A stretch of DNA of 64,000 nucleotides from Geosiphon pyriformis uo1. Lineage: Eukaryota; Fungi; Glomeromycota. Both the position numbers and the translations under genes were made by a program. Each line of letters opens with the position of its first letter. The first letter of the stretch is position 1. Shown here piece after piece: positions 1-64,000 of this stretch. Location: assembly GCA_016748015.1 (NCBI GenBank), contig JAAOMT010000630.1, forward strand, positions 186,001-250,000, in the 5' to 3' direction. Under the pieces are notes generated by a model. It had not been told where the DNA came from. It saw only the letters and a list, made by a program, of their open reading frames with translations, and made no database searches.

Positions 1-2
1 CC

Positions 3-479: not shown

Positions 480-699
480 TACCCTACATTCGATATTTGT
501 CAAACGCCACCAGTATTTTCAAGCAACAAATTCTTTAAGAACGTCATTATGTTTTGAGAATAATCCAAATAGGTCATTTTTTATTAAAAATGATGGTCAA
601 ATTGTTGTAAGGTCTTTTGGGTTCCAAAATCTTCGTTCTAATATATAATTTTTCTAGATTGCAGTGTTATTAGAAAGTTTTATTGTTTTTGTAAAATCA

Positions 700-2408: not shown

Positions 2409-2565
2409 TATTATAAAGCTTTTTTTTTAATTATTATATATATTAACTACTAATATTATATAGTTAGCTATTTTATTTTTAAAAAATAATTGATAACCTA
2501 ATTAATAATTTGGTTATTAATTTGCTTATTAACCTAATTATTAATTTAATCAATAATCGGATTAT
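2409..2565 (+). mobile_element. Old decayed fragment of an LTR related to family A
   Basis: ttattatatatattaactactaatattatatagttagcta aligns with the reverse complement of the LTR-A end (ttatcatatgtattagccactgatgtcatataattagcca). Decayed 12-bp repeats follow. Confidence 0.6.
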
Positions 2566-2599
2566 TATTACCAAAAATTTTCTACTCTTTTCTTAATAT

Positions 2600-7640: not shown

Positions 7641-7719
7641 TGTTTGTTGTTGGTTATTGTTAATTTGATTGAATAATATTTGGAAATTTATAATTTTGTC
7701 TTATTTTTGAAAGATAATC

Positions 7720-8580
7720 AATATTAATATACAGCTTTTTTAGTTTATAATATATAATATATTAGTAATTTACAAGAAATTCTGTCTATTGAATTTGTTT
7801 TGTATTTAATTTCAAGTTTTTGTTCTGTAACTATTTAAGTTTAATATTATTAGTAATAACATTAAATTTTTTAGACTTAAAATACAAATTAAAATAATAT
7901 AGGACCCAAATTACTGCTGCTATTTCTAGTTTAATAACAGAATAATATTTTTTTACTAGTTTTAATGTTTTGCTAACATAAACAATTACTTGTTTATTGT
8001 TATTGTTATCTAATTATAATAAAATAGTACTAAAAACAGTATAAAAAGTATTTGTAATTAGTTAAAATTTGTTGCTAAAATCTAAATATACAAGAATTAG
8101 AACTATTGTAAGTTTTACTTTAAGAGTTTCAAAAATCTGTTGTTGTTTAGCTGTTTATTTGTATTTAACATTTTTGTTAGTTAAGTAGTTCAAATTTTGT
8201 AATTTTTGAAAATTCTTGATAGTAAGATACTAATTTAGTAATATTTTATAAAACTTTAAAGTTTTTGACAATGCTAATTTTTTTTGAATTAAATTTAATT
8301 TCTTTTCTATTAATAATATAACCAAAAAAAGCCAAGCTGATTTTTTATTGAAAAATTTTTTGTAGATAAATTAAATAAGCTTTAAATAATAAAAAATAAA
8401 TATTAATATTATCAAAATAAACAACTACTGATTTTTAAATAAATTGATGGCTTTTTAGAGCAACTTAATAGAATTGTTGTTGTCTTGGTTTAATATTATT
8501 TATATAGATTTGGTGTTAAATCAAATTAGTTTTTTTTAAATAATAGTTATTTTAGTAAATATATTAGCATATTTAATAAT
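7720..8580 (-). pseudogene. RT (internally deleted) and RNase H relic of the family B element
   Basis: Decayed motifs: KTNLI*HQIY, VVYFDNINI (YxDD), ILVYLDFSNKF*LITNT, FNVITNN. Confidence 0.6.
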
Positions 8581-20331: not shown

Positions 20332-22112
20332 TGGGTGAGGGGTAAAGACACCGAAAGTGCACCTATACTATCCACTTTGGCCGAAAGGCCCAGAACCGTC
20401 TCCATTAGACATTTCATGCTGTCTTCCAGCTTAGACACCAAAGACATATCAAAAGACACCACTCCCACGACATTCCCACCACTAGTGGACACACCTAAAC
20501 CCTCATTCATTACTACATCCGTCCCTTGATCCTGTGATGAAGGGGTTACCAACGGCTGACATCCAGAGCTTGGCTGGAGAACCATTGGCCCAAGTGCATC
20601 CAACCTCTTAGCCAGCTTACCAACTTGCTCTGCGAGGCTGGCGAGACTGTGCTCAAGAGCAGTGAACCTATCGTTGACTTCCATCGCAACCTGTTGGGAT
20701 GGCTTCATCTCTGAAGAGGAGCCATTATTCACCACAATGTTCTGACTAGAAAGGGGGAGCGAAAAACACCCGTGAGCAACCTTTGCCCAAGAAAGACCAC
20801 CAAAAGAGACTGGACAGGCAACTGAAGCCGAGCATTTGGCATAGATGGCCGCTAGCCTGCTTTTATCTGTATCCAAGAAAACCCTACGCAGCAAACTACC
20901 AGAAGATAATTTCTCACCAACTGCACAACCCAATGACATGTGACCCAATTTCTTACACTTGGCGCATTTAGCAGAAATGAGGCAAGACCAGCGGAGATTG
21001 GTGTTCCTGAGTACTGGCGTAGTTCCCACAGCAGCATCCAATGATTCAGCAGAGTCAAAACAAACAACAACACACCTGGCCCAAGCATATATAACAGAAT
21101 GACAATCAATGATACACGTTTTCCCACTCACAGATCTAACAAAATCCCAGATATCATGAGCAGTGGTCCCTATCGGCAATGTGTAGAGCAGCACCCTATG
21201 TTGGTCCCTTACATCCCACACTTCCTTGTCTGAATCAGCCCTAGCCACATGTACAGCATCTTTCCCAATTAAGATGGACCATTCAGCTGTGGCCAAATCA
21301 GCTTGATCCGATCATTCGAATTCCACCATTGCCTTCTGTCACAGCCTGATCAACTGCATCTTGATCGCTTTAATAACTCCAAACTCGGATAGCGCAGCAC
21401 GCACAGCCTCAGCCAATGTTCCAACTGGAATTTCTCTCACGACCACAGCCCGATCTGATCGCCCAGATGATTTCTTAAGATCGGTGTTTACCATGATATT
21501 CGCACCAGTAGTCTTTTCAGTGGCCTTTATTAGACCCAATTCGGAAGTGAATGTTGCTCTGATGATCCCTGAGAATTTTGAGGGGGTAGACACCCCCCCA
21601 AAACCATTAATTCCAGAAAATAAACTTCTGATCTTCTTGAACTTTTCCTGGGTCAAATTTCCTTCTACTGCTTTCAGATCCAAATCCAAAGCAAATGACT
21701 TTCTAACCAAAACATTGACCAGGTTCTTAAGAGGAGGGGAAAGCACCAGAGGGGCATCCAGAAGAACATCATCATTATCATTGTCATCCAGGAAGTCAAT
21801 TTTTCCCAAAGGTTTTCCCAATGCTTTCTTAGTTGTTAACCGCAAACCTTTCGGCGTTTAATCCAAATCTCCACCAACAAGTGCACCACCTTCACCATAA
21901 TCAAAACTTGTCTTCTCAACAAGACATTCCTCTTCCATATCAACACTGTCAGATTCTGTGGTATCACCAGTCTCCGAACCCCATGAATGACCACTTTGCA
22001 CCTTAGCAGAACCCTTATCAGCACCAGTATTGTCCTTAAGAACACCACCCCTTCTTTTTTTCCTCAACAGAACAGTCTTGAAACCACCCTCAGAGCCAGA
22101 ACTTTTAACCAT
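20328..22112 (-). pseudogene. LINE ORF1
   Basis: VVVREIPVGT...LSEFGVI (RRM-like), CAKCKKLGHMSLGC, and a coiled-coil-like tail. Confidence 0.88.
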
Positions 22113-22769
22113 CTGTTTTATGACAGCAATACTAGAGCCAACAATGGCCTCATAATCAAGCAGAAATGGTTTGGATTTATCGTACTGAATAGTAAAAAAC
22201 TTCTCCCAAAAAACTTTTTGACTTTTTTTTTTAGGATTTGTGGAGGAACGAGAGAAGAAGTTTTTTTTATTTTATTAATTTTTTTTTAGTTTTTTAAGTT
22301 ATTTTTGTTGTTGTAATTTTAATTGTTTTATGTTAATTTAAAATAATTTTTCAATAACAACATAATAATTTTTAGTGGTAAGAATTAAGTTGAATTTCAG
22401 AAATGAATGTTCAATTATTTTTATAAAATTTGAAATTATTTGGAATAACTCTTGTTAAAAAATATTATTGTAAATAATTTCAATTTAAATAATTATTTAA
22501 TATAATAAGATAATTATTTAAATTATAAAAAGTAATATTGAATTTTTTGATTCTTTTTAGCAAATAAATATTTGGAATAGAAATTTTATGTTTTTTGCAA
22601 ATTTGTTTATTTAATTTAAAAATTTGTTGGGTAATAATAAATGTTGGGCAAATATATGTTTTATGAATTTTTCCAAAAAATAAAATAGTAATTGTTTTTG
22701 ATAACTTAAGAATTTGATGAGATTTATTTTGTATATTAAAAACTACATTTACTGAAATTATAAATTGTC

Positions 22770-23190
22770 TAATTAAATCAAAATTTTGAATTTTTTTTTT
22801 ACTTTTACTGAGTTTTTTTCAATTTTTAACTAATTGCAGATCCAAAATATTAATTAAAATAAGTAAATAGCTTAGGCAATTTTTTTAGCATGTTTAATTG
22901 TAAAAAAAATTTTGGTTTTATTTTAGATTATTATTGTAATATTTTTTATATCAATAATTTTTTTTCTAATATTGATTCTTTTACTTGCAAGTAATAATTA
23001 AAAAACAATTTGTATTATTGCTTCTAATAGCAATTTTAAGATTAATTTTGATTAAAAAATTTGGTTGTAATGTTAAAGTGTCTTTTTTTGAATATTGTAG
23101 ATTATATCTAACATCAATTTTATGAGTTTTTTTGGCTTAATTTCTTGTTTATTGTTGTCAAAGTATTTAAAAAATAAAGCAGATTGATTT
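22770..23190 (-). pseudogene. Decayed dUTPase domain of the family B element (minus-strand copy)
   Basis: Reverse complement of ~30735-31165. The relic translation aligns by eye to the intact dUTPase at 45417-46098. Confidence 0.7.
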
Positions 23191-26100
23191 TTAATAAAAC
23201 AGATTGGAATTGTTAAAACTTTTTTTTTCAATTTTTCCAAATTCAATTTTTTTTTAATTATCTTTTATAAATAATAGTATACTGAAAGCATAGTATTTAA
23301 ACATTATATATTATTACAAAACATAATGTATTCTTTATAAAGCTGAATATTTATTTGTTTAATCATTAAATTTGGATTTTTTTGAAGAGTAAGCATGACT
23401 AAAAGTTAGATAGTAAAGTTTTACTTTATTTTTATAATTAAATCTGGCTAATTTTATTATGTATTTAATGTATTTTACTTCTTTTATTTGATGAATATTT
23501 TTTTTGTTTTTCTATTAATTAGAATTATAGTTAGTTTATAAATTATTTTGGCATTATATAGTTAATAATAAAGTTTTTTAAAAGCACTATTATAGACTGT
23601 AGTGAATGATGTTTTTTTTTACTTTCTTAGAAATAAAAAGTACATATTGACAGATTTAATTATAGACTTTTTTTTTATTGCAATATTAATTTAGTTGTAT
23701 TCTTTTGGTAGTAATTTTTTATATGTAAAACAGAATATGTTGTTTTATTTTTTACTTTATTTTGAACTGTTTAATTGTTTTTGGTAACAGATTTTATAAT
23801 AGTAACAAATAAGAGTTTTATATTTTTTTTTGGTAATATGTAAACTTTTATAAATAAAAGCTTTTTGTTATAATTTTTGCATTTGAGTAGAATATAAAGT
23901 GGTTGTTTTTTTGGTTTTGGTTTTGAGTATAAAATATATTAACTATTAACTAATTTATTTATGAAAATAGACTATTAACTAATTTTTTTAGATTATAATA
24001 ATATTGATTATAATATAGATGTTTTGAATAATTGCTTAGTTTTTTCAGCCTAATTAGACCAAAAGTTAAGTGTCATATAAGTTTTAATTATTGGTTTTTT
24101 TTTCTCTTTAAATTTAAAAACTAGAACTTTTTTAAATTATTTATTAAAAGTATTATAAGTAACAAGTACTTTAGTGAATTAATTTTAATAAAAAATTTCT
24201 AATTCTTGGGTTTTTTAATCTAAATTTGCATTGACTTTAAGAAACCAATCATTTTTAATGAGAGCTTAATATTAAGATACATTTATAACAAAAACTTTAA
24301 TTAGAATAGTAATTCTATTAACTGTAAACAAAAAGTTGTCAATTTTTTCTATTAGTGTTTTTATTATACTATAAATAATAACAATAATTGTTTAAGCAGA
24401 TCTGTTAATGTTTTGCTTAAATTATTGTATTAACTAATAAACAATAATGTTTTTAGCTAATTTATTATCTAAAATTAATCAAAATTTTTTTTTCAATTTT
24501 GGCTTTAATATATATTGTTATAATAACTTTTTATTCTAAAACTACTGTATTAGTAAGTAAAAAAAGTAATTTATTGGCTTTAAATTCGAATAAAAATATG
24601 TTTAAAATATTGGCATTTTTAGCAATTTTTGTTGATAAAATTGTAGTGTTGTTATAAAAAAAAATTTGTTATTGTATTATAACTTTATTTTCTAAGAGTA
24701 CAATATAGTAAAAATTTTGGTCTTTTAATATTGTAAAATAACTTGATTAAGTATGAAAATGTTTGGGTGATTGTTAATTATTATTACAAAATATTAATTA
24801 ATTATTGAAATCAAATCTGTTATTATTTAACTAAAAATAGTTTTATAATATAAATTGGTTGAGTTAAACCAATTGTTTTACTAATAATTAATAATTTTAG
24901 ACTGGAAATTATTAATAGTATTGTTGTGGTTGTTGTAGAACAGACTAATAATATATAGACTAAAATCTTAATAGATAATAGTAGATTATAAAATTGTTAT
25001 TGTTAGAAAAAATAATGTTAATTATTTTGTTATTGTTAGTTTTTTTGCATTTTTTAGCAATTTTGTTTTCAATATTAAAAATTTTACAATAATAGCAGTT
25101 TAATTGTTGAAATTAATTGTTAAATAATAAGAAATTTTCTTAATTTTGTCATTAAAATAGTTAATACTTTTATTGTTGGTTAACAAAATATGTTTCAACT
25201 TTTTTTGTAAGTTGATTAATTTTTTTTTTAGCTGCTAAGCTGGTTTTTTCAATTGCCAAATTGACAAATTTAGTATAATAGGCTTTTTTTATTGCTATTT
25301 TATAGTTTTTAGTATATTAAATAGCAGTAATTAAATTTTTTAAAACATGTAGTTAAACTTTTTAATAAGTTTGTTTTTGAGTTCAGTAATAAATTAATCT
25401 AAAACTTAAGTATTAAAATAATAAGTATTGGTTTTCAACTGGTAGATTTTTTTAATAAGTTTATTAAACTTTTTAATATAAATTATAACAGATTCAAATA
25501 GTTTTTGTTTAATGTTTTAAAAACAATTTTGAAAAGTAATTAAAGTATTATTATTAATAAATTGTCTGAAAAAAGCAGTTTTAAAAGCTTGCCAATTTGC
25601 AAAAAAAATGGCCAAATTTTTAAACTATTTGTCTGCAATTCTTTTAAAAAAATAAAAAATTGCTTATAGTATTTTTTTTGCAGTCTATTCATTAGTGTTT
25701 TTTGCTTTGGTAATTTGGTTAAGCCATTTTTAAAAACTGGTTTTAGTGTTTTTTTGGAAAAATCAGGAATTTTTACAATATAAGTGATTGCTATTTTTTG
25801 TTTTTTTTATAATTGGTAATTTCTGTTTTCTTATTTTTTTTTTTCAATAAGTTTAAAAATGTTTTCTTTATTGCTAGTGTTTTTAAGTATTTGCTTTAGT
25901 TTTTTGCTAAAAAATCAAAAAAATTAGTATTAATATAGATTAGTTTTAACTATTGAATTGGATTTTTGGTAAAGTTTTCTGGTTTTGAAAATCAATTAAG
26001 TGGTGAATTTAGTATTTGTACTTAAGCAAACAAAGCTAAAAAAAATGTAATTAAAAGTGGTAATTTAGAACCAGTTTTTTATTCAAGTGTTTACAAATAT

Positions 26101-26512
26101 TAAAAAATTGTTTCTAGTATATTAAAAGTTGTAAAAATTGGTTGAATGGTATTTTTGTTTTTGTTGGTTGTTTTGGATTTAGACTTAAGTTCAAAAACAA
26201 ATTGTGAGTCAGCAGAATATTTTTCTTTACAAAATTTAATAATATTGCAGTTAAGTTTTTTAAAATAAGTAGTGCAAATATCTACACTAATATTTTTTGA
26301 ATCTTTATTTAAATAGTAAATTAAATTTTTAAGAAGATTTTGCTTGACTTCTATAATGCTGTAATTTCCAAAAAAATAATTATTGATTTAGTTTTTGATG
26401 TATTAAAAGAGAGTGTTTTTAAAAGTTTTAATTCCATCTCAAATTCCAAATTGTTATTTGCAATAAATATAAATTAACTAATAGTACTCTAGAGTTGTTA
26501 TATCTAATGCAG

Positions 26513-27564
26513 TATTATTAGCCAAAATTTAAGATATTATTTAGCATAAAATTATTTTTTTAATTTTTATTATTAATTAACATATATTATTATTTTAATT
26601 TATTATATATTATCTTATTAAATTATCTGAATTATAATTTAATTAATAATTTAATTTGTTTAAAACATAAATAAAACCAAATTGCAATGATTAAATTATA
26701 CAATACACCAAATTATATAACATTCAGAATTTGCCAAAATATTTAGTAATTTGATAAAATATTTAACAGTTTACCAAAATAATTTATAGTTTGCAGAAAT
26801 AACTTTAATTTAATAAAATATATCTTTAATTTGCCAAAATATTAGAAAAAAAAAGAGTGCTAGATTATAGAATAGTATTATAATAAGTTATATAAAAAAA
26901 CTTTTTTTTTCGAGAAAATATATTTTAGCTAAAATTTATTTTAATTGATATTTTTTTTAGTATATTTTATACAAATTAATTCCAATAAAACTTACTTTGA
27001 AAAACATAAAAATTTGTAACTATTTCTATTAAAAAATTAACCATTCTATATTAGTATTTTGAAATTGATTAGTTATCAATTACAATAACTGTTAGTAACT
27101 TTTAGATCTGAATTCAAAACAACTTTCTTAACACATTTTTTTATTTATTTTTTTAGTTTTTTAGTTTTTTTTTATATTATTGAGTAGTTTACAGTTAAAA
27201 TTTTTTGTAAAAAAGTTGACTTTTATGGCAAAGTAATTACACACATTTTTAAAGAGCTTATAGATAAGATTTCTTGTAAAAAATTTAACTTTTACTATAA
27301 AGTAATTACACATATTTTTAAAGAGCTAACAAACAAAATTTTTCTGTAAAAAAATCGACTTTTATCACAAAATAACTATATAAGTAATTGGCATAAAATT
27401 GGTTATTCTATTATAAATTCAATAGTATATATAATTCAAAGTATAAAGAAATATTTTAAAAAAAATCAACTTATCAAAAATTTATTAACTTTTATTAACA
27501 GCAAAATTAACAGCAAGATAACATTAACAACATTTAGAAAAAGATAAAAAAACCTCCAATAACA
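26513..27564 (+). repeat. 5' LTR, family B
   Basis: Reverse-complement homologue of the 2566-4454 and 6104-7085 LTRs. Ends ...ccaataaca. Confidence 0.85.
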
Positions 27565-27566
27565 TT

Positions 27567-27575
27567 TGGTGCTCT
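27567..27575 (+). promoter_or_regulatory. Primer binding site (TGGTGCTCT)
   Basis: TGG lies 2 nt after the LTR end and is complementary to a tRNA ending -GAGCACCA. Confidence 0.65.
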
Positions 27576-30500
27576 TTTAGAAATAATACAGTAACAACTA
27601 AATTAAAGTAGTAATTATATTAAACATAACAATTTTAGAATACTATCAGTTAATTTACATCTATTATAAACAATAATTTGAAATTTAAAATGGAATTACA
27701 GCCTTTAAAAAACACTTTTTTAATATATTGAAAATTTAATCAATAATTATTTCTTTAAAGATTACAATATTACAAAATTTAAGCAAAACTTTTTTAAAAA
27801 CCTAATTTACTATTCAAATAGAAATTCAAAAAACATTAATGCTGATAATTATGCTATTTATTTTGAAGAACTTGATTATAATATTATTATGTTTTGTAAA
27901 AAAAAATATTTTATCAACTCACAATTTGTTTTTAAACTTGAGTCTGAATTCAAAACAAATAATAAAAACAAAAAAAAGCACTTAATTAGTTCATACAACT
28001 TTTAATATACTAAAAACAATTTTTTAATACTTGTAAATATCTAAACAAGAAACCAATTCTAAATTACTACTTTTAATTATATCTTTTTAAGCTTTGTTTA
28101 CTTAAGCACAAATATTAAATTTACCACTTAATTAATTTTTAAAACCAGAAAACTTTATCAAAAATTTAATTCAACAGCCAAAACTAATTTATATTAGCAT
28201 TAATTTTCTTGATTTTTTAGCAAAAACCAAAACAAACATTTAAAAACACTAGCCAATAAAGAAAATACTTCTGAACTTATTGAAAAAGAGAAAGAAAAAA
28301 ATAAGAAAACAGAAACTACTAATTATAAAGAAGACAAAAAAATGGAAATCATTTACATTGTAAAGATTTTTGACTTTTATAAAGAAGATATTGAAACTAG
28401 CCTTTAAAAATAATTTGACCAAGTTATCAAAGCAGGAAACATTAATAAATAAACTACAGAAAAAATTTCATGACCAATTTTTTATTTTTTTAAAAGAATT
28501 ACAAGTAAATGGATTGAAAATTTGGTCATTTTTTTTAAAGATTAGCAAATTTTCAAAACTGTTTTTCTTAAATAGTTTATTAACAATAATACTTTAATTA
28601 CTTTTCAGAACTGTTTTTGAAACATTAAATAAGAATTATCTAAATTTGTTATAACTTATATTAAGAAGTTTAAAAAACTTTTTAGAAAAATTTACCAACT
28701 GAAAACTAATGTTTATTATTTTAATGTTAAGTTTTAAATCAATTTATTATTAAACTTAAAAACAAATTTATCAAAAAAGTTTAATTACATGTTTTAAAAA
28801 ATTTAGTTATTGTTATTTAGTATATTAAAACTATGAAATAGCAATAAAAAAAGCCAATTATACCAAATTTGTTAACTTGACAATTGGAAAAACCAGTTTA
28901 ATAGCTAAAAAAAAAATTAATTAACTTACCAAAAAAGTTAAAACACACTTTATTAATCAACAACAAAAATATTTATCATTTTAACAACAAAACCAAGTAA
29001 ATTTCTTATTATTTAACAACTTATTTTAACAACCAAACTGTTATTATTGTAAAATTCTTAAACATTAAAAACATAATTACCGAAAAATGCCAAAAAATTA
29101 ACAATAACAGAATAATCAATATTATTTTTCATAATAACAGCAATTTTACAATTTTTAATTATTTACTTACTACTTATTAAAATTTTAGTCCACTTATTAT
29201 CAATTTGCTCTATATCAACTACAACAATACTATTAACTATCTTTAGTTTAAAGTTATTAATTACCAATAAAATGATTGATTTAATTTAACCAATTTATAT
29301 CACAAAATTATTTTCAGTTAAACAACAACAGATTTGGTTTTAATAATTAATTAGTACTTTATAATAACAATCAACAACCATTCAAACACTTTTATATTTA
29401 ACTTAATTATCTTAAAATATTAAAAAACCAGAATTTTTATCATACTGTATTCTTAAAAAATAAAATTACAACACAATAACAAAACTCTTCCCATAATAAT
29501 ATTACAATTCCACCAACAAAAATTGCTAAAAATGCCAATATTTTAGACATATTTTATTCAAATTTAAAGCCAATAAATCACTTTTTTTGCACAGCAATAC
29601 AGTAATTTTAAAACAAAAAGCTATTATAGTAATATACACTAAAGTTAAAATAGAAAAAAAATGATTTAATTAATCTTAAATAGTAAATTAGCTAAAAACA
29701 TTATTACTTATTAGCTGATATAACAACTCAAAAAAATTATAAACTGATCTATTTAAACTGTAATTGTTATTGCTAATGATATAAAAAAACATTAGTAAAA
29801 AAAATTAATAATTTCTTCTTTATAATTGATAAAATTACTATTTTAATCAGTTTAATTAGATTAAAAATACTAAACAGTTATTCAAAACATTTACATTACA
29901 ACTTATATTATTATGGTTTAAAAAAATTAGCCAACAATTTACTTTTACAAATAAACTAGTTAACAGTTAGTATGTTTTATACTTAAAATTAAAACCAAAG
30001 AAACAACCATCCTATATTTTATTTAAATACAAAAATTATAATAAAAAGCTTTTATTTATAAGAGCTTACATATTATCAAAGAAAAAATACAAAACTTGTA
30101 CTTGTTATTACTGCAAAATTTGCTACTGAAAATAATTTAGCAGTCCAAAATAAAGTGAAAAATAAGACAACATATTCTGTTTTATATATAAAAAATTACT
30201 GTTTAAAAAATACAACTGAATTAATATTACAATAAAAAAAAGAGTATGCAATTAAATCTGTTAATATATTCTTTTTATCCCTAAAAAATAAAACATAAAA
30301 CATTATTTACAGTAATATATAATAGTGTATTCAATAAACTCTATTACTATTTACATAATATTAAAATAATTTATAAACTAATAATAGTTTTAATTAATAG
30401 AGGATCTTAAAAAAAAGTTTACCAAATAAAAAAGACAGAATATATTAAATACATTATAGAATTAGCCGAATTTAATTATGAAAATAAAGTAAAACTTTAC

Positions 30501-30734
30501 TATCTGACTTTTAATTATGCTTATTTCTTAAAGAAAATTTAAATTTAACAACTAAAACAAATAAATATTTAGCTTTATAAAAAATATATTATGCTTTATA
30601 ATAATATATAGTGTTCTAAATGTTATGCTTTCAACATACTATTACTCATTACAAATAATCAAAAAAAAATTAAATTTGAAGAAATTAAAAAAAAACCTTA
30701 ACAATTTCAATTTACTTTACCAAAAATTAACTCA

Positions 30735-31165
30735 CTTTATTTCTTAAATACTTTAACAACAATAAACAAAGAATCAAATTAAAAAAAGTCTATAAAATTA
30801 ATACTGAATATGATCTACAATATCCAGAAAAAATACTTTAATATTATATTCCAAGTTTTTAATTAAAATCAATTTCAAAATTGCTTTTAAAATTCTACCA
30901 GAAGCAATAATACAAATTGCTTCCTAATCATTATTTGTAAGCAAAAAAATTAATGTTAGAGAAAAAATCATTACTGCAAAATATATTAAAAATATTATAA
31001 TAATATTTCAAAATAAAACCAAAAATTTTTTTATAATTAAACATGCTAAAAAATTGTTCAAGCTATTTATTTATTTTTAATTAATATTTTGGGTCTGAAA
31101 TTAGTCAAAAATTAAGAAAAACTTAGCAAAAGTAAAAAAAAACTCAAGATTTTAAATCAATTAAA
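30735..31165 (+). pseudogene. Decayed dUTPase domain of the family B element (plus-strand copy)
   Basis: Relic translation KYFNNN...EYDLQYP...IKINFKIAFKILPEAIIQIAS*SL...IVQAIYL matches the intact RYFDNG...GFDLRY...TKIDLKIAVEIPPGIMVQMESRSSL...IAQAIFL. Confidence 0.75.
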
Positions 31166-31200
31166 TAATTTACAATTTTAGTAAATATAACTTTTAACAT

Positions 31201-31851
31201 TATTACAAGTAATTATTTGGGATGTTGAAACAAATAACAAACTTGTAACTTGATGCTTAATAGCTGGTAATATTGGTAATTTTTAAAGGTTTTGAAGTTT
31301 GAAGATTTTGGTTAAGTCTTTTGTATAATGAACAGAAATTTAATTAATGGTTTCTTCTGTGAATTTTTTTCTTCAGCATACACTTGAAATTCCCTCAACA
31401 CAACTAATGTTTTTGAAATTGATTAGCTACCAATTTCAGTAATCTGTTAGTGACTCCAGGCCTGGATAGAAAACATTTCTCTTGATAAAATTCTATTTCT
31501 TTTACATTTTTTTTTTTTTTTTTTTATTTTTTTATCATAATTATTAGGGTAGTCTACAGACAAGATTCCTGTAGAAGAGTTGACTTTTACAGCAAAGTAA
31601 CTACACATTTTTTAGTAAGCTTCCAGACAAGCAATTCCTGGGAAAGAGTTAACATTTACTACAATGTAACTACATAAAGTAACTAGCAAGGAATTGGCCA
31701 TTCCACTTATAAGCCCAGCAGTTCAAATTATAGAAAATAATTTGAAGATAAATTCAGTTACTGGAGGTTCAACTACTTTCTGAAAACATAAATTCACGGC
31801 AAATCAGCATTAACAACATTCAAGAAAAGAGACCAAAAACCTCCAGTAATA
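31201..31851. repeat. Composite LTR fragment: family C terminus (31201 to ~31380) joined to the 3' half of a family B LTR
   Basis: The first part matches 39671 onward. The remainder matches the reverse complement of 6104 to ~6590. Confidence 0.7.
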
Positions 31852-31855
31852 TCAG

Positions 31856-32150
31856 CAATGTTCTTTTTCAAGGTAGGTCAATAATAGTGAGCTAAAGTTT
31901 TCTGAATTGTTTTTATTTTTCCAAAGTGTTTAGCTAATGGGTCAGTATACATATTATATATTACAATTTCTCTTTCTTCAAATTTGATAACTCTTTGGGG
32001 GTGGTCAGGATCTTTTCTGTTTCTTTTGTATAATTGGTTCTGGCAAATCAAATACAAATGTTCTTTTTGCTGTCAAGTGTATTCTGGTGGGTATTGTCCT
32101 TTACCCAAAAATTTCATTAAGGCAGAATAGTTGTCCAAGTCCATTATCAT
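31856..32150 (-). pseudogene. Integrase N-terminal (zinc-binding) part
   Basis: MIMDLDNYSALMKFL...MYTDPLAKHFG...YY*PTL (decayed H-x-GHFG...YYWP). Confidence 0.75.
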
Positions 32151-52919: not shown

Positions 52920-53055
52920 TGTTATTCTGATCGGCCCGAGTGGCTGGTCATGTGTAGACAATGCATGATTCATGCCTAGTATAGATCATTTTCTTGATAT
53001 GTAGCTCTAGGTAGTGTTTGGACCTCACTCGTAAAATGAAATAAAAAAAAAAAAA

Positions 53056-55110
53056 TTAAAACTTTTATTTATTATAAAATTTACTAGATATTAATATTTA
53101 ATATTGAAATATTAAGTATAATTTATAATAATTTAATTAATAAAACAGAATTTATTTATTTGTTTAATTTAAAAATAATATTAAATTCAAAGTTAATAAA
53201 TTTTGAATTTGCCAAATATCAAAAAACAGTTAAAATATTTAATTACTTAAAAAATACTTTATTTTAAAGACAATTTGAAAATATATTAATAATATTATAA
53301 ATATATTAAAATTAATTTATATTAATATCTTAATAATTTTATTTTAAATAAAAAATATTTTTAAGAAAACAATATTACAAATATATAAATATTATAAAAC
53401 TATAAATAATTATATATTATTTTAGTTATTTTATAAATCTATTTAATAAAAGTATTAAAGTATAAAAATAAAAATTAATTGGTTTTAATTTTAGTTTTTT
53501 AAGCAAATTAATACTAATTATAAAATAAATAATTAATATTTTATTTTTATTTTTTTGCATTTACTTAATTTTAATTATTTTGGTTATTTATTATATAATT
53601 TTAACAAGTTAAACAAAATATATATTTAGTTTTTAAAATTTGTTAAAATATTAGCAAAAAAAATATTAAATTTATAAAAAATTAAAAAAAGTTTTAATTT
53701 TTTTATATACAAAGCCAATTTTATCTAATATAATATAATTATTAAATAATTTATAAATTAAACATAATTTATGTTTTTTTTTATATAATTAAACTTAAGT
53801 TAAATTATATTAAATATACAAAATTATTACTATTAAAAACAAACCAATTAATCATATAATAGTTTTATAATATTAAATTTGGTATTAAAAATTTAAAACT
53901 TTTAAAATATTATTATTTTAACAAATTGTTTTTTATATATAAAGAAATTTAAATTTTTGTTAAATATATTTTCATATTATATTTTATTTTAAGACTTATT
54001 ATTTTTTTGGTTAAATTATTAATAATTCTTTTAAAAATGCCAAAATTTTTTTAATATTAAAAATTTTGTTTTTAAACTTAATATTTATAAAAACATAATT
54101 ACCAAAATATTTTATAATTAAAATAACCAAATTAATAATAAATTAAACCAAAAATTTTAATTTAATTAATTTAAAATTTAAAAAGCTAATCTAAAGCCAA
54201 ATACAAATTAATACTTATAATAACAACAAAAAAAGCCAAAAAAACAGTAGTTTTAACATAAAATTTTATAATAACAAAATAAAACTTAAAAATTTTAAAG
54301 TTATTTATAAGTTTAAATAAAAACTTTTAAAATAAAAATAAAATATCTTATAATTAAAAACTAAATAATTAAAATCTTAATACTTAAAACAATATTAATA
54401 ACCAAAAATTTTTTATTAAATATGGTTTTTTTAATGTAATAATTTTATAAACAGTAATATTTAAATTAGTTTAAAAACTAAATATAACAATTATATATTT
54501 TAATTATTAAAAAAATTAAAAAACCAAAAAAAAACAGATGTAATTATAACTTAAAAAACCAAATTAATAATTTTAAAAATAATATAATTAAAAAAAATTG
54601 ATTAATTTAATTTTATGATTTTTTTAATTAACAAAAAAAAATTTTAATATTGTTTTTTATTATTAAAATTAATTAATAAACAAACAGTTATAAATATATT
54701 AAAAAACTTAAAATATACAATAAAATATTATTAAATATCAGTAAATTTCAACATAACTTAAAAAATTTTACCAAAAATATTAAAAATATTTTTAATATTA
54801 ATAATTAAAATATATTTAGATATTTTACAAAACAATAATAACAAAAAAAAATGTAAACTTAAAAATTATTAAAGACTTAACAACTTTAAAAATAGAAAAA
54901 TATAATTTGTTTTGTATTTAAAATTAATAATAATTAATTAAAAACCAATATATTAAATAATATAGTTTAAAATTAATTCAGATTAAAATTGGTTAATATG
55001 TTTTTATTTTTTCTAGTTATAATAAAATATAATTTAATTATTAATTATAATATAAAATTTTGAAATTTTATAAATAATTATAATTTATATATTTATTATA
55101 TATAAATCAA
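53056..55110. other. Extremely AT-rich tract (terminally decayed repeat)
   Basis: Near absence of C/G. Continuous in character with 44345-44700 on the other side of LINE copy 3. Confidence 0.5.
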
Positions 55111-55119
55111 AAATAATAA

Positions 55120-58100
55120 AAAAACTTTTTTCTCTTCTATGTTTAAATTTCTCAAAGAGCAATTTTTTTGAAAAAAAAGTTTTTGTTTTTGTTTTCCTAC
55201 TTATATTACTTTTAATATTTCTTAAGTTAATAATCTTTTTATAATAAATCTGAAAACTGTTTTAAGTAGTATTATATTAAAGAAAAAGGCTTCTAAGAAT
55301 GTTTTTTATGGTCTTGTTAATAGTACTTTTTTTCAATAATAAAATGTCTTTGTTAATAATATTAAGCACTTTGGGAATGAAAATTTTTTTTTTAATCAAA
55401 CCTGATCTTATTAATAACATGTATTCGAATATGAATAGTAAATTCAGTAATAGTAAAATTAATAATGCTATAATAAATTTAAGTAGTGGTTTTTTTTTTG
55501 GTTTAGCTATAATAACTTCCAAAGCTAAGAGAATTAATATGGATTTGGATGATGGCTTTCTTATAAATATAATTGACTTTGGAATAAATAAAGATAAAAG
55601 TTTTCTTTTCCCTCTTTTTAATATTTCTTTTGACAAAAAGTAAGTTAACCCTAAAATAATAAAGACTCAGATCAAAATGACTGTTAAGAAATCTTTTATA
55701 TTAAATATTGATTTATTAGCTGTAGAGGAAAAATTAACAACAGCAAAAATTCAGCTTATTAAAAAAATTTTTTTGGTAATTAATGATTTTGGGAGAGTTA
55801 TTATCTCCTCAAAATTTGAAAAAATTATTAGATCTATATTTACATTAGAGAAAAACATAAAAAAAGCTATATTATTGATTAAAAAAAAGGAATTAAAGTA
55901 AATGGTAATCTTAAAAAACAAAAATTAAGTCAAATTAGGCTGTGGTAATCAAAAAAATTTTCATGAATATGCCAAAAAAATAATTGTTATTGTAGTAGCT
56001 AAGTTTGATAAAATAGTATTAATTTGATTATAATTAATTAGGCTATAGTAAAAAACTGTAGTGAAATTTGTTAAATTAAGTCAAATTAAGCAATTGGTAT
56101 TATAATGATCTTTTTTAATTAAAAAAAAATTCAGTATGTATAATTATAACCATAAGAGATTGCAGTATTTGGATGTTTAAGAATTGTTTTAGAACACTTT
56201 TATTTACTCTTTCTATAGAAACCACCACTTATAATCTTGGATCTTTTTTAAAAAAAGCTGATGAGAAAATTTGTGTTATTAATTGATTATTTAAGACTGA
56301 TAATAAGATCTACTATGCAATAATTAGTTTTAAATCTGATAAAAAATTGGAATTTGCTTTCTATATTGAGCCAATTTTTGGTAATATAAATCTATTTTAG
56401 GCTAAAATAAACTTGGTTTAGTGCAAAAAGTGTAAAAAGTTTAAACATTTTGCTTTGAAGTGTAATGTATTAAATACATTTACTTTTAAGTCTTTGAGAA
56501 TATTTAAAAGAATTGTTTTAAATACAAATTATCTTTAGGTGACCAAATTGTATGCAAAAAAAAGTGTTTCTATTTTTTGCCCTATTGTTTTTGGTAGCAA
56601 ATCTTGGATATAAATGGTTTTACTTACTGTTATCTTTAATAATACTTATTTTGATTCTGGTTCTGAATTCTTTTTTTTTGGTATATTACATGTTAAAAAA
56701 AGTTTTGTAGTTGTTCAAGATAATTTATTCATTAATATTTGCTTAACTTTTTTGGAATATTTCTTAGAGCTTTTGGCTAATTAAGTGTTATGTATTGTGT
56801 AAAAATTAAGCAGTATGCTTTTAATGTTTCTGGTGTTCACTTTTTAATATTTTTCTTTTAATGCATCTGTTTTTCTAAATTTAGAATCAGATTTTAATAT
56901 GGCTTTAGACAACTTATTTGAGCTATCTATTTTTCCTTTTTTAATTGCAAATAATATGGTTTCAAATTTAGATTTAAGCAGTTTAAAGATTTTAACTACC
57001 AAGATAGATAAATTGAAATTTAAAATAGTGGTCTTTGAAGTTTTTGTCAGTTCGGATTTAGTAAGATTAAATTAGTTGTGTGCTGGCTTGAGTTTTTAAT
57101 ATTTTTTTTATCTCAATAATTAATTTAGCTTGAAAGTTTGCTATATGTAATGTTTGAAGTTTTAATGTCTCTGCAAAACAAAAAAACATTGTTTATTAGC
57201 ATGTGAGCTTAAGTAATATGATTTTAATTATCACAAAAACAAAATTAAGATTTAGTATTAAGCCCTAAATATTAAACAAGTTTAATGAGATATAGATTTT
57301 TATATCTGGTTTAAATAAAAATTTTCTTGGTGCTGAGGTGGCTATTATTGTGAACAATTCTTTGGCTCAACATGTTTTTAAAGTAAAAGAAATTTCTGGT
57401 TAGATTATTTTAGTGAGACTTCTGTTTAAAGAAAAATTGTCAGTTATAATCTTAGGTTTATATGCTGGTGTTTTTGCTGAAGTAAGATTTAGTTAAACAT
57501 TAAAAGTCAATTTTTTTATTATTAAGACAGTTAACTCTAGTACTTTTGTGGTATTGGGTAAGAACTTCAATGAAAATGATTTAAAAAAAAGTGTGAGTTT
57601 CAAATTTTGTGTGAATTTGGGTTTAATCAACTCATTTTGTAAATATTTATTGGTCAAAACATCTACTTAGAGCAATTTTAAAGGCATTAAAAAGATTATT
57701 GATTTCATTTTTGTGAATTAAAATCTAACATCTGCACTTATTAGTCATAGAATTAACTTTGTGTCTAATTTTTTTGATATTGATTACAATGCAGTTTCAA
57801 TTATAATTGGTTTAAATAGTCTCTTAGATGTTTATCTTAATAATATACATAAACAGACTAATAAAGACAGATGGAAGTTTAAGATTAAGAATACTGATAT
57901 TAGTAAGTGGACACAATTTAGAGAATATTTGTTGAACAGATTCTTAGAAAGAATAATGGGCTTTAATAATACAAAAAGTTGTGGTAATTTAGATGTAATA
58001 TAAGAGATTTTGAGAAAAATAGTAATTAGTTTTGCTATTAAAGTATTTTTCAGACTTTGGTTCTGTGAGTTTGAATATTCAAAAAATAAGCTGTCATTAA

Positions 58101-60195: not shown

Positions 60196-60570
60196 TGTTA
60201 TAAATAAACTTGGCAAAGTAAAATAGTAATATTTGGTGCTTTAACTTTTGGGTTAAAAAAAGCTTTAAAGAGTTTTTTATAGATCTGTTTGTTGTGTCTG
60301 GTTTATCAATCTCTGAAGATTTTTTACTGAAGATGAATTTACTCATGAAGTTTTTTGGTTATAAGACACAGAAGTATAGGTTTATGGTATTGCAACTTGT
60401 CAATATGAGCTTTTTTTTTTGAGCTAGTCAAGTGCAATTACTAGGGTCTGATAGTGTCTTTTCACTCTTCTGGTAAGCTGACAAGATAATGTTAATATTC
60501 AAACCTAGGAGGAGCTTTTCTTTTTTACCAGACTATTATGAAGTCTATTCTCAAACAATTGATTTTTATG
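60196..60570. mobile_element. Probable LTR fragment interrupting LINE copy 5
   Basis: LINE homology stops abruptly at a TGTTA preceded by ATAT. The other end is not seen. Confidence 0.45.
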
Positions 60571-61075
60571 TACAGTGAACTCTCTCTATAGTCCCTCTGG
60601 TTATAGTTACTATCTTCTTATAATTACATTTTTTTAAAAACCAAAACCATTTATATATAATATTATCTCTTTATAGTCACTTTTACTATATATATCTTCT
60701 TATAGTTCTTATTTCTACAAATATAATAGCAGAATATAAATAATTTCTACTCTCTATAGTTATACTATAATCATATAATATTAGATATGAACATTAGATG
60801 TCATTTTATATTTAATTGAACATGTAAGGTACCTCAGATTATAAAAAATATCCAAATATTATTTTAAAATGTTGACCCTATTTTGCATTTAAGTATTGCA
60901 ATAATAAAACTTATATTAATCTATCATTGTTTGCTTTATTCATTAATTTATTATTTTATTGGTATAATTTTAAAAGTTACAACAAGCAAATTAGTGTAAA
61001 ATAGCATGCTTTGCTTTGCCTTGGTGGCAAATATTGAATAATTGTCTAAGCCACTAAGTAAATTTATTTAGTATT

Positions 61076-61457
61076 GCTGTAATAATTGTCATAACTATCC
61101 AAAAATAAGTAAAGTAAATTATCATTGTTATATTGATTGTCGAGGCTATCCAAAAGTAAGTGAATCTGATTATTATTGTTACATTGATTGTCATAACCAT
61201 TTAGATATAAGCAAATTTGATTAATATATTCATGTAGATTGTCATAGCTGTTTAAAAATAAGTGAATTACTATTGTTGCATTAATTACTGAGACCATCCA
61301 AAAGTAAGTAAATTTGATTATTATTGTTACATTGATTGTTGAGGCCATTAGAAGATAAGTGATTAAATTATCATTGTCACATCAATTGTTAAGACTATTG
61401 GGAGATAAGCAAACTGAATTATCATTGCTATGTTAATTGTTGTGGCTGTTTGGAGAT
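61076..61457. repeat. About 7 x 51-bp tandem repeat
   Basis: Unit e.g. gattgtcgaggctatccaaaagtaagtgaatctgattattattgttacatt. One plus frame reads DCRGYPKVSESDYYCYI. Confidence 0.8.
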
Positions 61458-61511
61458 ATTTTTTAAAAATATAAAAATCTCAAATTAAATTTTTACCATC
61501 TATTTTGTTTA

Positions 61512-62237
61512 AATGCTAGAAACTCTGCAGTAATGGATAAATTAGGAAATTGCTACTTTCACAGCAAATGTGTTAATTAGGACATAGGTCAAGCTGTCAA
61601 ATTATATCAAAAAACAAGTGATGCAAAGAATTCTGCTACAATAAACAATTTAGATTATTGCTATTAGCATGATGAAAATATTAATTAGAACAAAAGTCAA
61701 AGGGTCAAATTATATCAAAAGACTGTTGATGCAGAGAATTTTGAAGCAATAACTTGATTAAGTTATTGCTATCAATATGGTAAAGGTGTCAATTAGAACA
61801 CAGATCAAGCTATCAAATTGTATCAAAAGACAAGTGATGCAAGAAATTCTGAAGCAATGACTCAATTAGGACATTGCTATTTTAATGGCAAATGTATTAA
61901 TCAGAACACAGATCAAGCAGTCAAATTGTATCAAAAAACGGCTAATGCAGGAGATTCTGGGGCAATAAATTAGATAGGTTATTGCTACTTTAATGGCAAA
62001 TGCGTTGATCAGGACATGAGTGAAGTGGTCAAATTTTTTTGAATTGTAGTTAATGCAGAGAATTCTGGTGCAATAAATTGGTTAGGTTATTGCTATAAGT
62101 ATGGCAAAGGCATTAATAGGGCAAGAGTGAAAGGATCAAATTATATCAAAAAGTGGTTGATGCAGGAAGTTTTACTGCAATGTACAATTTAAGTTGTTGC
62201 TATAAGTGTGGTGGTGTCAATCAAAATAAGAGTGAAT
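61512..62237 (+). pseudogene. Sel1-like repeat array (about 7 x 36 aa / 108 bp)
   Basis: For example NSEAMTQLGHCYFNGKCINQNTDQAVKLYQKTANAG. Stops mostly arise from CAG>TAG and TGG>TAG/TGA. Confidence 0.9.
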
Positions 62238-62239
62238 TC

Positions 62240-62820
62240 CATATATTGTCATTTACTTAAACCCTAAGACTCAATTTGTTAGTCAAAATCTCATTTGATC
62301 TGACCAAACAAGCTTTCAAGTTAACCACACAAAAGGTTTTTATTCAATGTTGTCTCACTAATAGACAAAAAAAGAAGAGAGCACAAACTTAACAATATCT
62401 TAACTTTACTATTATCATTGATCTCACTTGAAACTACTTTGATAATTACCCAATTACTTGCAGTAATTATTCTAAATATCTTAATTTCTTATAAGGTTAT
62501 GTCATAGGAATGTTTTTTATTGCATTGCATGGATGCTTTGAAGTTGAATCATACATTGGCCCATATTTTGATTGATATCTTCCACTTTGCCTCTGTAATT
62601 ACAATTATTATATTATGTATTTTAATTGCCCAATTAATTGGCTCCTTTCCATAGCTTCCAGATATCTTATATTGCAAACAAATCTTGACTTAGTCATTGA
62701 ATACCAATAAAACACCATAGATAACTGATGAAATGAATTTGCAACATGTTGTCTCATTGGCATTGAGAATAGATTGTAATGCTTTATGTTTTATCATTAT
62801 GTTTTTAATTAATAAACTCG
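62240..62820 (-). pseudogene. PD-(D/E)XK restriction-endonuclease-fold domain of the type expanded in Glomeromycotina effector-like/CRN-associated proteins
   Basis: Relic NANETTCCKFISSVIYGV...YKISGSYGKG(P)INWAIK...IVITEAK..DINQNMGQCMIQLQ, matching G-x-G-x-x-D...EAK...Q..AQ...Q. Contains frameshifts. Confidence 0.65.
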
Positions 62821-62905
62821 TAAAGCATGTTAGTAAGTGTTTTTAGAGTGGAAAAATAAATTGTTAACCACTTCTATTAGCTGTGATGTTTACATAATTA
62901 ATATA

Positions 62906-63019
62906 AGCATTGTTGTGTTTGGGGGGTTTAACAACATAATATTGTGCTATCTTCTATGCAATTATGCAAATATGCAAAGGATCAAATTGACAGCCTTTAT
63001 TATTGATCATCAGTTGGAG
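62906..63019 (+). pseudogene. Fragment (single exon) of a TilS/MesJ-like PP-loop ATPase gene
   Basis: SIVVFGGFNNIILCYLL...KLTAFIIDHQL reads as decayed IAVSGGxDSMALxxLL...AFxVDHxL. It ends at a GAG|GTAAGA splice-donor-like site. Confidence 0.6.
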
Positions 63020-63283
63020 GTAAGAGGCAAAAAGTGTCACAGATACATTATTGAAATTAGGTTTCTTTTTACCAAGAATCTGTCATTTGTACTTAGAATC
63101 TTACAGTTGGATTAAAACTTTTATTTTTATAATTTGGCTGCTTTTTATAATCTGAAGCACTTCATATGACATAAGACACCTCACATGTCTGATTAGATAT
63201 AAGGCAAAATGACATTTGAGACATAACAGATACATCAATGCATTATAAAAGCAAAATGCAATAAAAAGTGTGTTCTTATTAAT

Positions 63284-63629
63284 ATGCCAAAAAATGCAAA
63301 CCAAAAGTGAGTAGTAATCTTCTTGGAGACTAAAAAGACTCTCTGCCAGTACAAACTAGAGCATTCTGACTATTTAGCAAATAGACTTATCAAAATATTC
63401 AATCTAAAAGTTGACCACTCTATTATAACAAAGATACTCATAAAATCAGACCAATGAATTGAAAAAAATGTATCTGGCAACTCTAGTTAATTGACAAAAA
63501 ACAGAAAAGAGATGTTTCCAAAGATAAATGATGCACTAGGAGAATGGATGCTTAGAACACTAACTACCAACTACATTCTTACTGGAAAAATTTTACAAAT
63601 AAAAGCTCTCAAGTTTGCTGAAAAGTTTT
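63284..63629 (+). pseudogene. N-terminal CENP-B-type HTH domains of a pogo/Tigger transposase
   Basis: One frame from ATG 63284: KKTLCQYKLEH...FNLKVDHSIITKIL...FPKINDALGEWM...ILTGKILQIKALKFA, with three in-frame stops. Confidence 0.8.
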
Positions 63630-63701
63630 CAGTATTATTCATAAAAAAAAAACAGATAGAGAAAATAGCAGACCAATAAAAGAATAATATTTAGTACGTG
63701 A

Positions 63702-63848
63702 GCACATTGCTTAGCAATGTGGAGCAATATCAGAAATTATGGCACATTGCTTAGCAATGTGGAGCAATGTCAAAAAGCACAGCACATTGCTTAGCAATGT
63801 GGAGCAATATTAGAAAATTAGGGCACATTGTTCAGCAATGTAAGCAAT
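63702..63848. repeat. 4 x ~40-bp repeat containing the palindrome CACATTGCT-T-AGCAATGTG
   Basis: Units start at 63702, 63742, 63782 and 63823. Confidence 0.9.
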
Positions 63849-64000
63849 CTTGTAGAACATTAATTATGTATATATAGCAGTAGCATTAAAAATAGAAAGA
63901 GCAGAATTTTTTAGTTAGAAATCTTCCATCCAAAAAATATCAAATAAATAAATCATTCACCATCCACATCCACTCTTTACTATTAACACTTTATGTTAAT

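Follow-up and report, generated by a model that had tools for sequence, protein, structure and literature searches.

The window, a stretch of 64,000 nucleotides from the genome of the glomeromycete fungus Geosiphon pyriformis uo1, carries a dead pogo element with its own transposase gene, which picked up a Sel1 fragment and carried it to at least nine places. As one joint reading we consider it likely that the region studied makes up the left three fifths of a pogo-superfamily DNA transposon, decayed and 4.41 kb long, and that the insert within it is a fragment of a Sel1-repeat gene together with an oppositely oriented fragment of another gene. At least two, and probably three, unrelated pieces have been acquired in the same internal region of this transposon family, and each has been amplified.

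Ends, size and content of the element

The element itself can be read directly. Its left end starts at 60573 as TA followed by CAGTGAACTCTCT, with the TA and the CAGTG terminus at 60571-60577, and its right end, GAGAGTTCACTG followed by TA, lies at window-equivalent 65823, 1.8 kb past the window. The right terminal inverted repeat (TIR), GATTATAAAGAGAGTTCACTG, occupies window-equivalent 65803-65823, again with TA after it, and in the reconstructed ends the two 21-bp TIRs are identical at 19 of 21 positions. A subterminal motif, CTCTCTATAGT, is found at 60582, 60667 and 60750 and again at 65764. TA flanks every terminus in every copy examined, including the window copy, and no further TIR-like match was found between the two ends. 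The element measures 4,410 bp after subtraction of an 841-bp nested repeat (63629-64469), inside which tandem units of 40 bp, each with a palindrome, occupy 63702-63848; unitigs of one DNA sequencing run, possibly the same run from which the assembly was built, also show the form without this interruption, 63628 being joined to 64470. The features are as follows.

60571-60572: TA target-site duplication, left copy, read directly
60573-60593, plus strand: left TIR, CAGTGAACTCTCTCTATAGTC
60573-60816, plus strand: left end common to both lineages described below, about 90% identical to the main lineage and carrying the CTCTCTATAGT motifs
60817-61441, plus strand: ancestral backbone with 51-bp tandem repeats (61085-61339), missing from the main lineage and 73-77% identical to a sister family
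61442-62805: lineage-specific insert of about 1.36 kb, the true cargo (search coordinates)
61500-62235, plus strand: Sel1-repeat array of about seven 108-bp units
62240-62805, minus strand: decayed open-frame remnant of no recognised family, with a stop deficit and a D...ExK-like motif
62806-62895, plus strand: backbone block immediately 5' of the PP-loop piece, 77-84% identical to the sister family
62894-63019, plus strand: PP-loop (TilS-like) first-exon-like piece, 42 codons
63284-63628, plus strand: 5' part of the pogo transposase gene from its ATG (63284), coding for an N-terminal HTH plus the first half of HTH_Tnp_Tc5
63629-64000, continuing to 64469: nested high-copy repeat of 841 bp, missing here in all other copies
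window-equivalent 65824-65825, outside the window: TA target-site duplication, right copy, after the right TIR

A first-pass annotation, made from the letters of the sequence alone, had already read the TA-CAGTG terminus with its subterminal repeats, and the right TIR plus TA that it predicted is present. The end that it gave at 63629 has to be abandoned, as this is where the nested repeat starts and not an element boundary.

The transposase gene

The transposase gene resumes at window-equivalent 64470 and stops near 65679. Window positions 63491-63628 match positions 1-36 of the HTH_Tnp_Tc5 profile (PF03221) with an E-value of 2.5e-4 and 21.4 bits, slightly below the cut-off of 22.2 bits because the nested insert at 63629 truncates the piece; the same profile reaches 2.3e-16 on a natural piece of a sister copy. 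The DDE_1 profile (PF03184) gives 8.9e-22 on a natural piece of another copy of the window's lineage and 6.9e-5 on the downstream piece of the window copy. A CENP-B-HTH transposase start was therefore correctly recognised in the first pass and, with the TIRs, the TA duplications and both domains all found, so was the pogo/Tigger type of the element.

Once the C-to-T decay is reversed, the reconstructed gene of roughly 520 codons forms a single open frame, and reconstructions of both lineages (W and main, see below) give an open frame of 538 codons, whose C-terminal tail bears the PIP-box-like string QLQIDSFF. Some copies keep the complete D,D,D triad, as does the reconstruction of the main lineage. 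The first catalytic D is N in the W reconstruction and in eight of the nine W copies, from which a founder that was already dead might be suspected; this was rejected, since the D is retained in one W copy and the codon lies at a CpG hot spot. Most likely the W founder still encoded a working transposase.

Copies, lineages and decay

The family has about 100 copies in G. pyriformis, among which the window copy belongs to a nine-copy lineage, here called W, while the main lineage has at least 40 copies; a sister family is about 75% identical to the window's family. The nine W copies lie on eight contigs, all nine have the full cargo and a TA at each end, and their 300-bp flanks are unrelated to one another. 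The tie between cargo and terminus that the first-pass annotation supposed is thus seen in eight further copies, and none of the three contrary outcomes that it had named (no right TIR, a TIR closing the element before 61500, cargo never linked to this terminus) occurred.

W and the main lineage have only element positions 1-244 and the last 2,089 bp in common. A tree of this common 2.1 kb is star-like and does not resolve W as a clade. There are no fixed diagnostic sites between the lineages and two near-fixed ones, and the majority differences fall almost all at polymorphic transition sites, of which many are at CpG. All copies decay by RIP-like C-to-T hypermutation. Per C/G site, C>T/G>A decay amounts to 0.23-0.28 in the cargo and 0.21-0.24 in the common part, and the similar decay across parts described in the first pass stands. 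The public Geosiphon annotation lists fragments of these elements as hypothetical proteins.

The lineage-specific insert

DNA searches with the cargo, in which all first-look candidates were scored (14 of 14 and 34 of 34), found 61442-62805 nowhere but in the nine W copies and the derivatives of this lineage. A gap of only about 60-110 bp separates the two flanking backbone blocks in five or more copies of the sister family. The plus-strand part of the insert is a Sel1 array, as the first-pass annotation had said: 108-bp units are visible at 61513-62142, the window ORF at 61818-61973 matches the Sel1 profile (PF08238) with an E-value of 5.5e-10 and 39.9 bits, above the gathering cut-off of 30.7, and a piece of a sister copy reaches 2e-18 and 66.6 bits against the same cut-off. 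The array lacks a start codon, and its reconstruction is still broken by two stops and one frameshift.

The parent of this array was sought at two levels. With 60817-62230 as DNA query and all 34 candidates scored, the genome returned only transposon copies and sister-family backbone; at the protein level, the closest host Sel1 genes are only about 40% identical. The parent gene that had been expected was thus not found at either level, and because of this the label 'host-derived' depends for the W cargo on its Sel1 domain content and on the stop deficit of the opposite frame.

That minus-strand frame has two stops where 11.5 are expected (P about 0.007), and its stops are common to all nine copies. 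A string resembling the D...(D/E)xK motif is visible in it, which had led to its being called a PD-(D/E)XK nuclease domain. We find this assignment unsupported: natural pieces of the frame have no relatives in Pfam, PDB sequences, the ESM Atlas or a set of 5.8 billion proteins. The frame has no other copy elsewhere in the genome, and no CRN-like homology was found in any of these sources or in the genome.

That the element carries foreign, coding-derived DNA is upheld. The more specific claim of three unrelated host fragments fails in the form given, the lineage-specific insert consisting only of the Sel1 array and the minus-strand frame, with the third fragment, the PP-loop piece, being family-wide. 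The 51-bp repeat, which had been listed with the cargo, does exist and belongs to the ancestral backbone, the sister family having such repeats too.

The PP-loop piece

In reconstruction the PP-loop piece begins with an ATG, and GTAAGA follows it at 63020. Across both families, about 100 copies contain the piece. The ORF in the window matches PF01171 with an E-value of 0.0048, and some 35 decayed copies all match positions 2-52 of that profile, the N-terminal SGGxDS region, with scores of 16-27 bits, a single copy exceeding the cut-off. Its sole relative outside transposons is the first exon of the one PP-loop gene in the genome (C526:113215-114088), which is 53% identical over 38 amino acids. 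The piece is a fragment and not an enzyme. The TilS-like exon of the first-pass annotation is thus real; as a capture by this particular copy it fails, the sister family having it as well, and its distribution marks it as what appears to be an old component of the family and not the window copy's own cargo. The results for the sister family, for this gene and for the C337 and C702 loci below are genome-search coordinates and identities.

A different insert in the main lineage

In the main lineage, the backbone is replaced by about 1.9 kb of antisense DNA from a DUF6589-family element. Short homologues of the ORF in this cargo gave no function in Pfam and the Atlas; an exhaustive profile search matched it to residues ~640-945 of DUF6589 proteins of 1,000 amino acids. 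Parent-type copies of the DUF6589 element were found at C337 and C702; these are longer and decayed, and align collinearly with the cargo at 89-90% DNA identity. Linkage of this ORF to pogo in Gigaspora margarita was considered and rejected, as the surrounding 6 kb contain no transposase. Because the source is multi-copy, and probably mobile itself, the event is better described as a chimera of two transposable elements than as capture of a host gene. The proposed genome search for the same ends with the same or different cargo has therefore yielded both, the W copies with the same and the main lineage with another, and this different fragment is unexpected support for the general idea of capture.

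Deletion derivatives

Two internal-deletion derivatives, D1 (2,052 bp) and D2 (about 1,757 bp), have Sel1 repeats as their only cargo, and both have transposed. Their junctions show microhomology of 2 bp and about 9 bp, and that of D1 is present in the unitigs of the DNA sequencing run. In the 2,052-bp derivative the Sel1 frame is joined in frame to the transposase tail ending in QLQIDSFF. These two are the strictly Pack-type forms of the family.

Alternative origins and consequences of the insert

The 1.36-kb insert might be the remnant of another mobile element, or an accessory gene owned by the element, instead of captured cellular DNA. No cellular parent of it was found, the main-lineage cargo does derive from a multi-copy element, and the Sel1 units borne by transposons are 50-60% alike among themselves as against about 40% to any host Sel1 gene, all of which this explanation would accommodate. 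It sits less well with the insert occurring only inside W copies and their derivatives, with the lack of any TIR-like match inside the element, and with Sel1 arrays being a large cellular family in this genome, with open frames of up to 2,065 amino acids; a maintained accessory gene is further argued against because the array is startless and retains stops and a frameshift in reconstruction. We regard this origin as unlikely. An assembly artefact or segmental duplication as the source of this arrangement, a thought invited by a contig that holds two W copies, inverted relative to each other and separated by 10 kb, is barely conceivable, being refuted by the TA at the ends and the unrelated flanks of nine copies on eight contigs; unitigs, perhaps of the assembly's own run, also span the region and its junctions.

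The first-pass annotation went on to suggest that a pogo element which captures and shuffles gene pieces could be one route to the expansion of the Sel1 and CRN-like families. Two different cargos in the same slot, an old PP-loop piece and the in-frame fusion of Sel1 and transposase tail in D1 are what such a route might produce. There are, however, only about 20 transposon-borne arrays against 1,708 Sel1 candidates in the genome, host Sel1 genes come no closer than about 40% to the transposon array, every transposon-borne array examined contains stops, and no CRN-like or nuclease homology was found. The proposal is unsupported because all the transposon-borne arrays are pseudogenes; nothing links the element to the host's Sel1 expansion, and we hold the proposal to be very improbable.

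Possible mechanism

Abortive gap repair is established for P, Ac/Ds and mariner elements as a source of internal-deletion derivatives and filler DNA. In the present family, the internal region that varies runs from the left subterminal repeats to the old PP-loop first-exon-like piece upstream of the transposase. On the preferred reading, that of captured fragments, excision would leave a double-strand gap whose repair may switch template to ectopic DNA, giving the W and main-lineage acquisitions, and the same abortive route may have given both deletion derivatives. Each chimera would then have been copied by the family's transposase, and RIP-like C-to-T hypermutation would afterwards have inactivated all copies. 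As in the gap-repair products of P, Ac/Ds and mariner, there are two derivatives with short junction microhomology, and internal parts are replaced while the ends are kept; unlike there, we infer the mechanism of capture here from end products only.

A bolder version, which we think rather doubtful, is that in this family the stretch from the left subterminal repeats to a captured host PP-loop promoter and first exon serves as a dedicated 'cargo bay', the exon possibly being spliced in frame onto the transposase. Such a splice could use the GT at 63020 and the AG at 63228-63229, in phase 0, with 18 open codons before the ATG; RNA runs were searched for the stretch and none contains it. If this were true, the elements would be autonomous and yet repeatedly swap gene fragments, a fungal cut-and-paste counterpart of autonomous gene-shuffling elements, and could yield in-frame fusions of Sel1 and transposase tail like the 2,052-bp derivative.

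Relation to known systems and significance

Gene-fragment capture by cut-and-paste transposons has been documented mainly in plants, as Pack-MULE, Pack-CACTA and Pack-Mariner, and in the literature that we searched it is reported neither for pogo elements nor for Glomeromycotina. With pogo/Tigger/Fot1-type elements (Tc1/mariner) the family shares the TA duplication, short TIRs, CENP-B-type HTH_Tnp_Tc5 and DDE_1 domains and a C-terminal PIP-box-like motif, but it measures 4.3-4.4 kb and not about 2-3 kb, because the left end and the gene are separated by some 2.2 kb of non-transposase DNA, a region that differs between lineages. The Pack-TYPE transposons of rice are non-autonomous by definition (PMC8903248, PMC6379663). 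Like them, this is a TIR element with a target duplication, within whose conserved ends coding-derived DNA from more than one source locus has been amplified along at low copy number, and it was mobilised with its cargo, several copies having the same ends and unrelated flanks. The differences are that the host is a glomeromycete fungus and not a plant, that no parent of the Sel1 cargo was found in the genome, and that the W lineage has a whole transposase gene; for this last reason W, including the window copy, is not Pack-type in the strict sense, and the label given in the first pass fits only the 2.05-kb and 1.76-kb derivatives. Autonomous transposons with incorporated host genes have been surveyed (PMC3597677) and likewise encode a transposase and hold foreign coding sequence within their ends, whereas here the fragments are truncated and decayed and in part antisense, with no sign of service to the element.

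The data set a limit, in giving no support to such elements having built the mycorrhizal Sel1 expansion. Within that limit, this is a real but modest example of gene-fragment capture, in which one pogo family of an early-diverging symbiotic fungus has captured and amplified pieces of other sequences, the donor family being known for one of them.

Extent of the element

The first-pass annotation had proposed a Pack-type pogo/Tigger transposon at 60573-63629 and predicted a right terminal inverted repeat (TIR) followed by TA. The left end, read directly within 60541-60640, is ...ATG TA/CAGTGAACTCTCTCTATAGTCC..., and the predicted right end, ...GATTATAAAGAGAGTTCACTG/TA, is present and ends at window-equivalent 65823 (numbering continued past 64000; 10 kb read around the locus), 1.8 kb beyond the window, with no further TIR-like match between the two. 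A genome-wide DNA search with 60573-64000 returned eight other copies of the entire left part, shorter copies of its positions 1-1403 or 1-1479, and many of 62896-63628 only. Every match ended at 63628 because the window copy carries a nested repeat that is absent from the other copies; 63629, taken initially as the limit of the finding, is the start of this repeat, and pogo homology resumes after 64469. Without the repeat the element measures 4,410 bp. The features discussed below are as follows.

Features of the element family
61513-62142, plus strand: Sel1 array of 108-bp units (repeat analysis and Pfam)
62240-62805, minus strand: open-frame region with a stop deficit in the reconstruction
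63629-64469 (window part 63629-64000): nested 841-bp repeat, not in other copies at that point
C784:34917-36848 (L037:7917-9848), antisense: DUF6589 cargo of the main lineage (profile search)
C337:11869-15510 and C702:156131-159757: donor-type DUF6589 loci, decayed, multi-copy
60573-62051 joined to 65249-65823 (window-equivalent): deletion derivative D1, 2,051-2,052 bp, three copies examined, junction microhomology 2 bp
60573-61975 joined to about 65470-65823: deletion derivative D2, 1,745-1,758 bp, three copies examined, microhomology about 9 bp, imperfect

The nested repeat contains 3.7 tandem units of 40 bp, each with the palindrome CATTGCTTAGCAATG, and no obvious target duplication surrounds it (AAGTTT/TCAGTA...GTAACA/CTGGAA). 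It is a very high-copy element, since its unitig depth is 30,000-140,000 as against roughly 50-170 for single-copy sequence. Another copy adjoins a truncated relative of the window element on C701, one splits a main-lineage element (L023), and unitigs of a DNA run contain the uninterrupted 63628/64470 form. The window at large alternates between AT deserts of 8-22% GC (1-8000, 22000-32000 and 53000-55500) and blocks of 39-45% GC (8-22 kb, 32-36 kb and 46-53 kb) in which strand skew is strong.

Transposase and lineages

Assignment to pogo is borne out by natural open pieces: the best E-value for HTH_Tnp_Tc5 is 2.3e-16, and a copy of the window element's lineage, W, matches DDE_1 at E 8.9e-22; the window copy's own pieces match HTH_Tnp_Tc5 positions 1-36, interrupted by the nested repeat, and DDE_1. 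Founder sequences were reconstructed by a script that set sites segregating for C/T or G/A between copies back to C or G, and for both W and the main lineage, C, this gives a single open frame of 538 codons with its ATG at window 63284 and a tail terminating in the PIP-box-like QLQIDSFF. Three catalytic D residues are present in the reconstructed main-lineage frame. The first of these positions is N in eight of nine W copies; as this position lies at a CpG and the remaining W copy still reads D, the W founder transposase was probably intact.

About 85-90 copies with the transposase piece were found at 68% or more amino-acid identity, and the 300-bp flanks of the copies examined are all unrelated, with TA at the ends. 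The main lineage comprises at least 40 full copies of 4,265 bp (for example C784:34673-38937). The window copy has companions with the same ends and cargo, eight in number, and 62231-62895 is limited to these nine (C716, C692 (two), C595, C702, C423, C439, C701 and C599). Homology between W and C is confined to the initial 244 bp and the final 2,089 bp (starting at 62896); between these lie 2,079 bp in W and an unrelated 1,932 bp in C. Two sites that are T in 19/19 C copies are C in most W copies, which fits a W lineage not descended from the C founder.

More divergent relatives, the sister family (C784:501253..., C646, C459, C654, C421, C656, C512 and C624), match W at 60838-61441 (73-77%) and 62806-62891 (77-84%); the PP-loop piece comes next, with the transposase roughly 1 kb beyond it. 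Because only about 60-110 bp separate the two blocks in these copies, the W backbone is ancestral, including the 51-bp repeats, and the insert truly specific to W is about 61442-62805 (1.36 kb). This backbone was replaced in the C lineage.

Decay

C>T and G>A changes make up 97% of the differences between the copies and the reconstruction.

Sites changed per copy in window 60573-63628 and about 50 related copies (L001-L054)
CpG: about 50%
CpC: 23-25%
CpA: 16-20%
CpT: 13-14%
Other substitution types, all: mostly 0.1-0.3%

The hypermutation is RIP-like, but its context preference differs and every dinucleotide context is hit; in AMF, RIP signatures are reported as not detected (PMC8647823). The similar decay noted earlier across all parts holds, cargo and shared parts being equally affected. 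The cargo was inside the element before decay began.

Acquired DNA

The plus-strand Sel1 array is clear, with Pfam Sel1 above cut-off in window ORF 61818-61973 and sister pieces. It is a gene fragment: the reconstruction has about seven units, 50-60% identical among themselves, lacks a start codon and contains two stops and one frameshift. Searches for a parent were negative: the DNA matches were only transposon copies and the sister-family backbone (34/34 candidates scored), and at the protein level the best cellular arrays, in open frames of up to 2,065 aa, share about 40% identity with it.

The minus-strand region is probably coding-derived, as its reconstructed frame has 2 stops against 11.5 expected (P about 0.007, best of six frames); the stops are common to 9/9 W copies, and no further copy was found elsewhere in the genome. 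Its proposed identity as a PD-(D/E)XK nuclease is unsupported, a D...ExK-like string being insufficient alone and no relative being found in the protein database, Atlas or PDB.

Of the supposed TilS-like exon cargo, a PP-loop first-exon-like piece does exist, as an old family-wide component. The window ORF matches PF01171 weakly, and a whole-genome search for this family found one real gene (C526:113215-114088, first exon covering profile positions 4-63) and about 35 transposon copies, all matching positions 2-52. When the natural 45-aa piece was used as query (103/103 candidates scored), about a hundred were transposon copies of both families and one was the C526 exon, 53% identical over 38 aa. 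Its presence in both families places the capture before their split, so it is not cargo of W. The reconstructed piece starts at an ATG (62894) and stops before GTAAGA (63020); putative splicing from this GT to the AG at 63228-63229 would fuse it, in phase, with 18 open codons upstream of the transposase ATG, the open frame in both reconstructions starting directly after the TAA adjoining this AG. The capture may have supplied an exon and promoter serving the transposase.

The C-specific segment holds an open 326-codon minus-strand frame in the reconstruction, which an exhaustive profile search aligned with residues about 640-945 of proteins of roughly 1,000 aa; several of these match DUF6589. 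The cargo comprises the last third of such a gene with about 1 kb of its 3' flank, antisense. Longer decayed copies in Geosiphon cover residues 36-945, and those at C337:12889-15510 and C702:157139-159757 overlap stretches that share 89-90% identity with the segment from its position 252 or 267 to 2174; these loci are donor-type copies of a multi-copy element, which is probably mobile. Protein-library relatives measure 900-1,200 aa, some with RAG1-importin-binding-like or zinc-finger matches. The gene may represent an unclassified transposase family. A Gigaspora margarita locus of this family (L055:5865-6459, WTPW01001305.1) matches about 470 bp of the Geosiphon cargo at 70-78% DNA identity and has no pogo transposase within 6 kb. 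Such identity is high between fungal orders and may be due either to strong constraint or to the donor element having spread horizontally.

Deletion derivatives and wider meaning

D1 and D2, each with breakpoints identical among its copies, are strictly Pack-type members of the family. D1 (L010:1500-3551, L011:1501-3552 and L012:928-2978) carries an in-frame fusion of the Sel1 frame with about the final 149 codons of the transposase, ending in QLQIDSFF; the tail is still stop-free in two of three copies, and the junction was seen in unitigs of a DNA run. The acquisition of foreign DNA and the internal deletions alike are inferred to have arisen by template switching during repair of the gap left on excision.

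The internal region of this pogo family is variable; the family made two or three independent acquisitions, each chimera being amplified, and also gave rise to deletion derivatives. The suggestion that such an element offers a route to Sel1 expansion is not supported. The kind is already known, since rice has Pack-Mariner elements (PMC8903248); the Geosiphon element differs from these in being a fungal pogo with its transposase retained.
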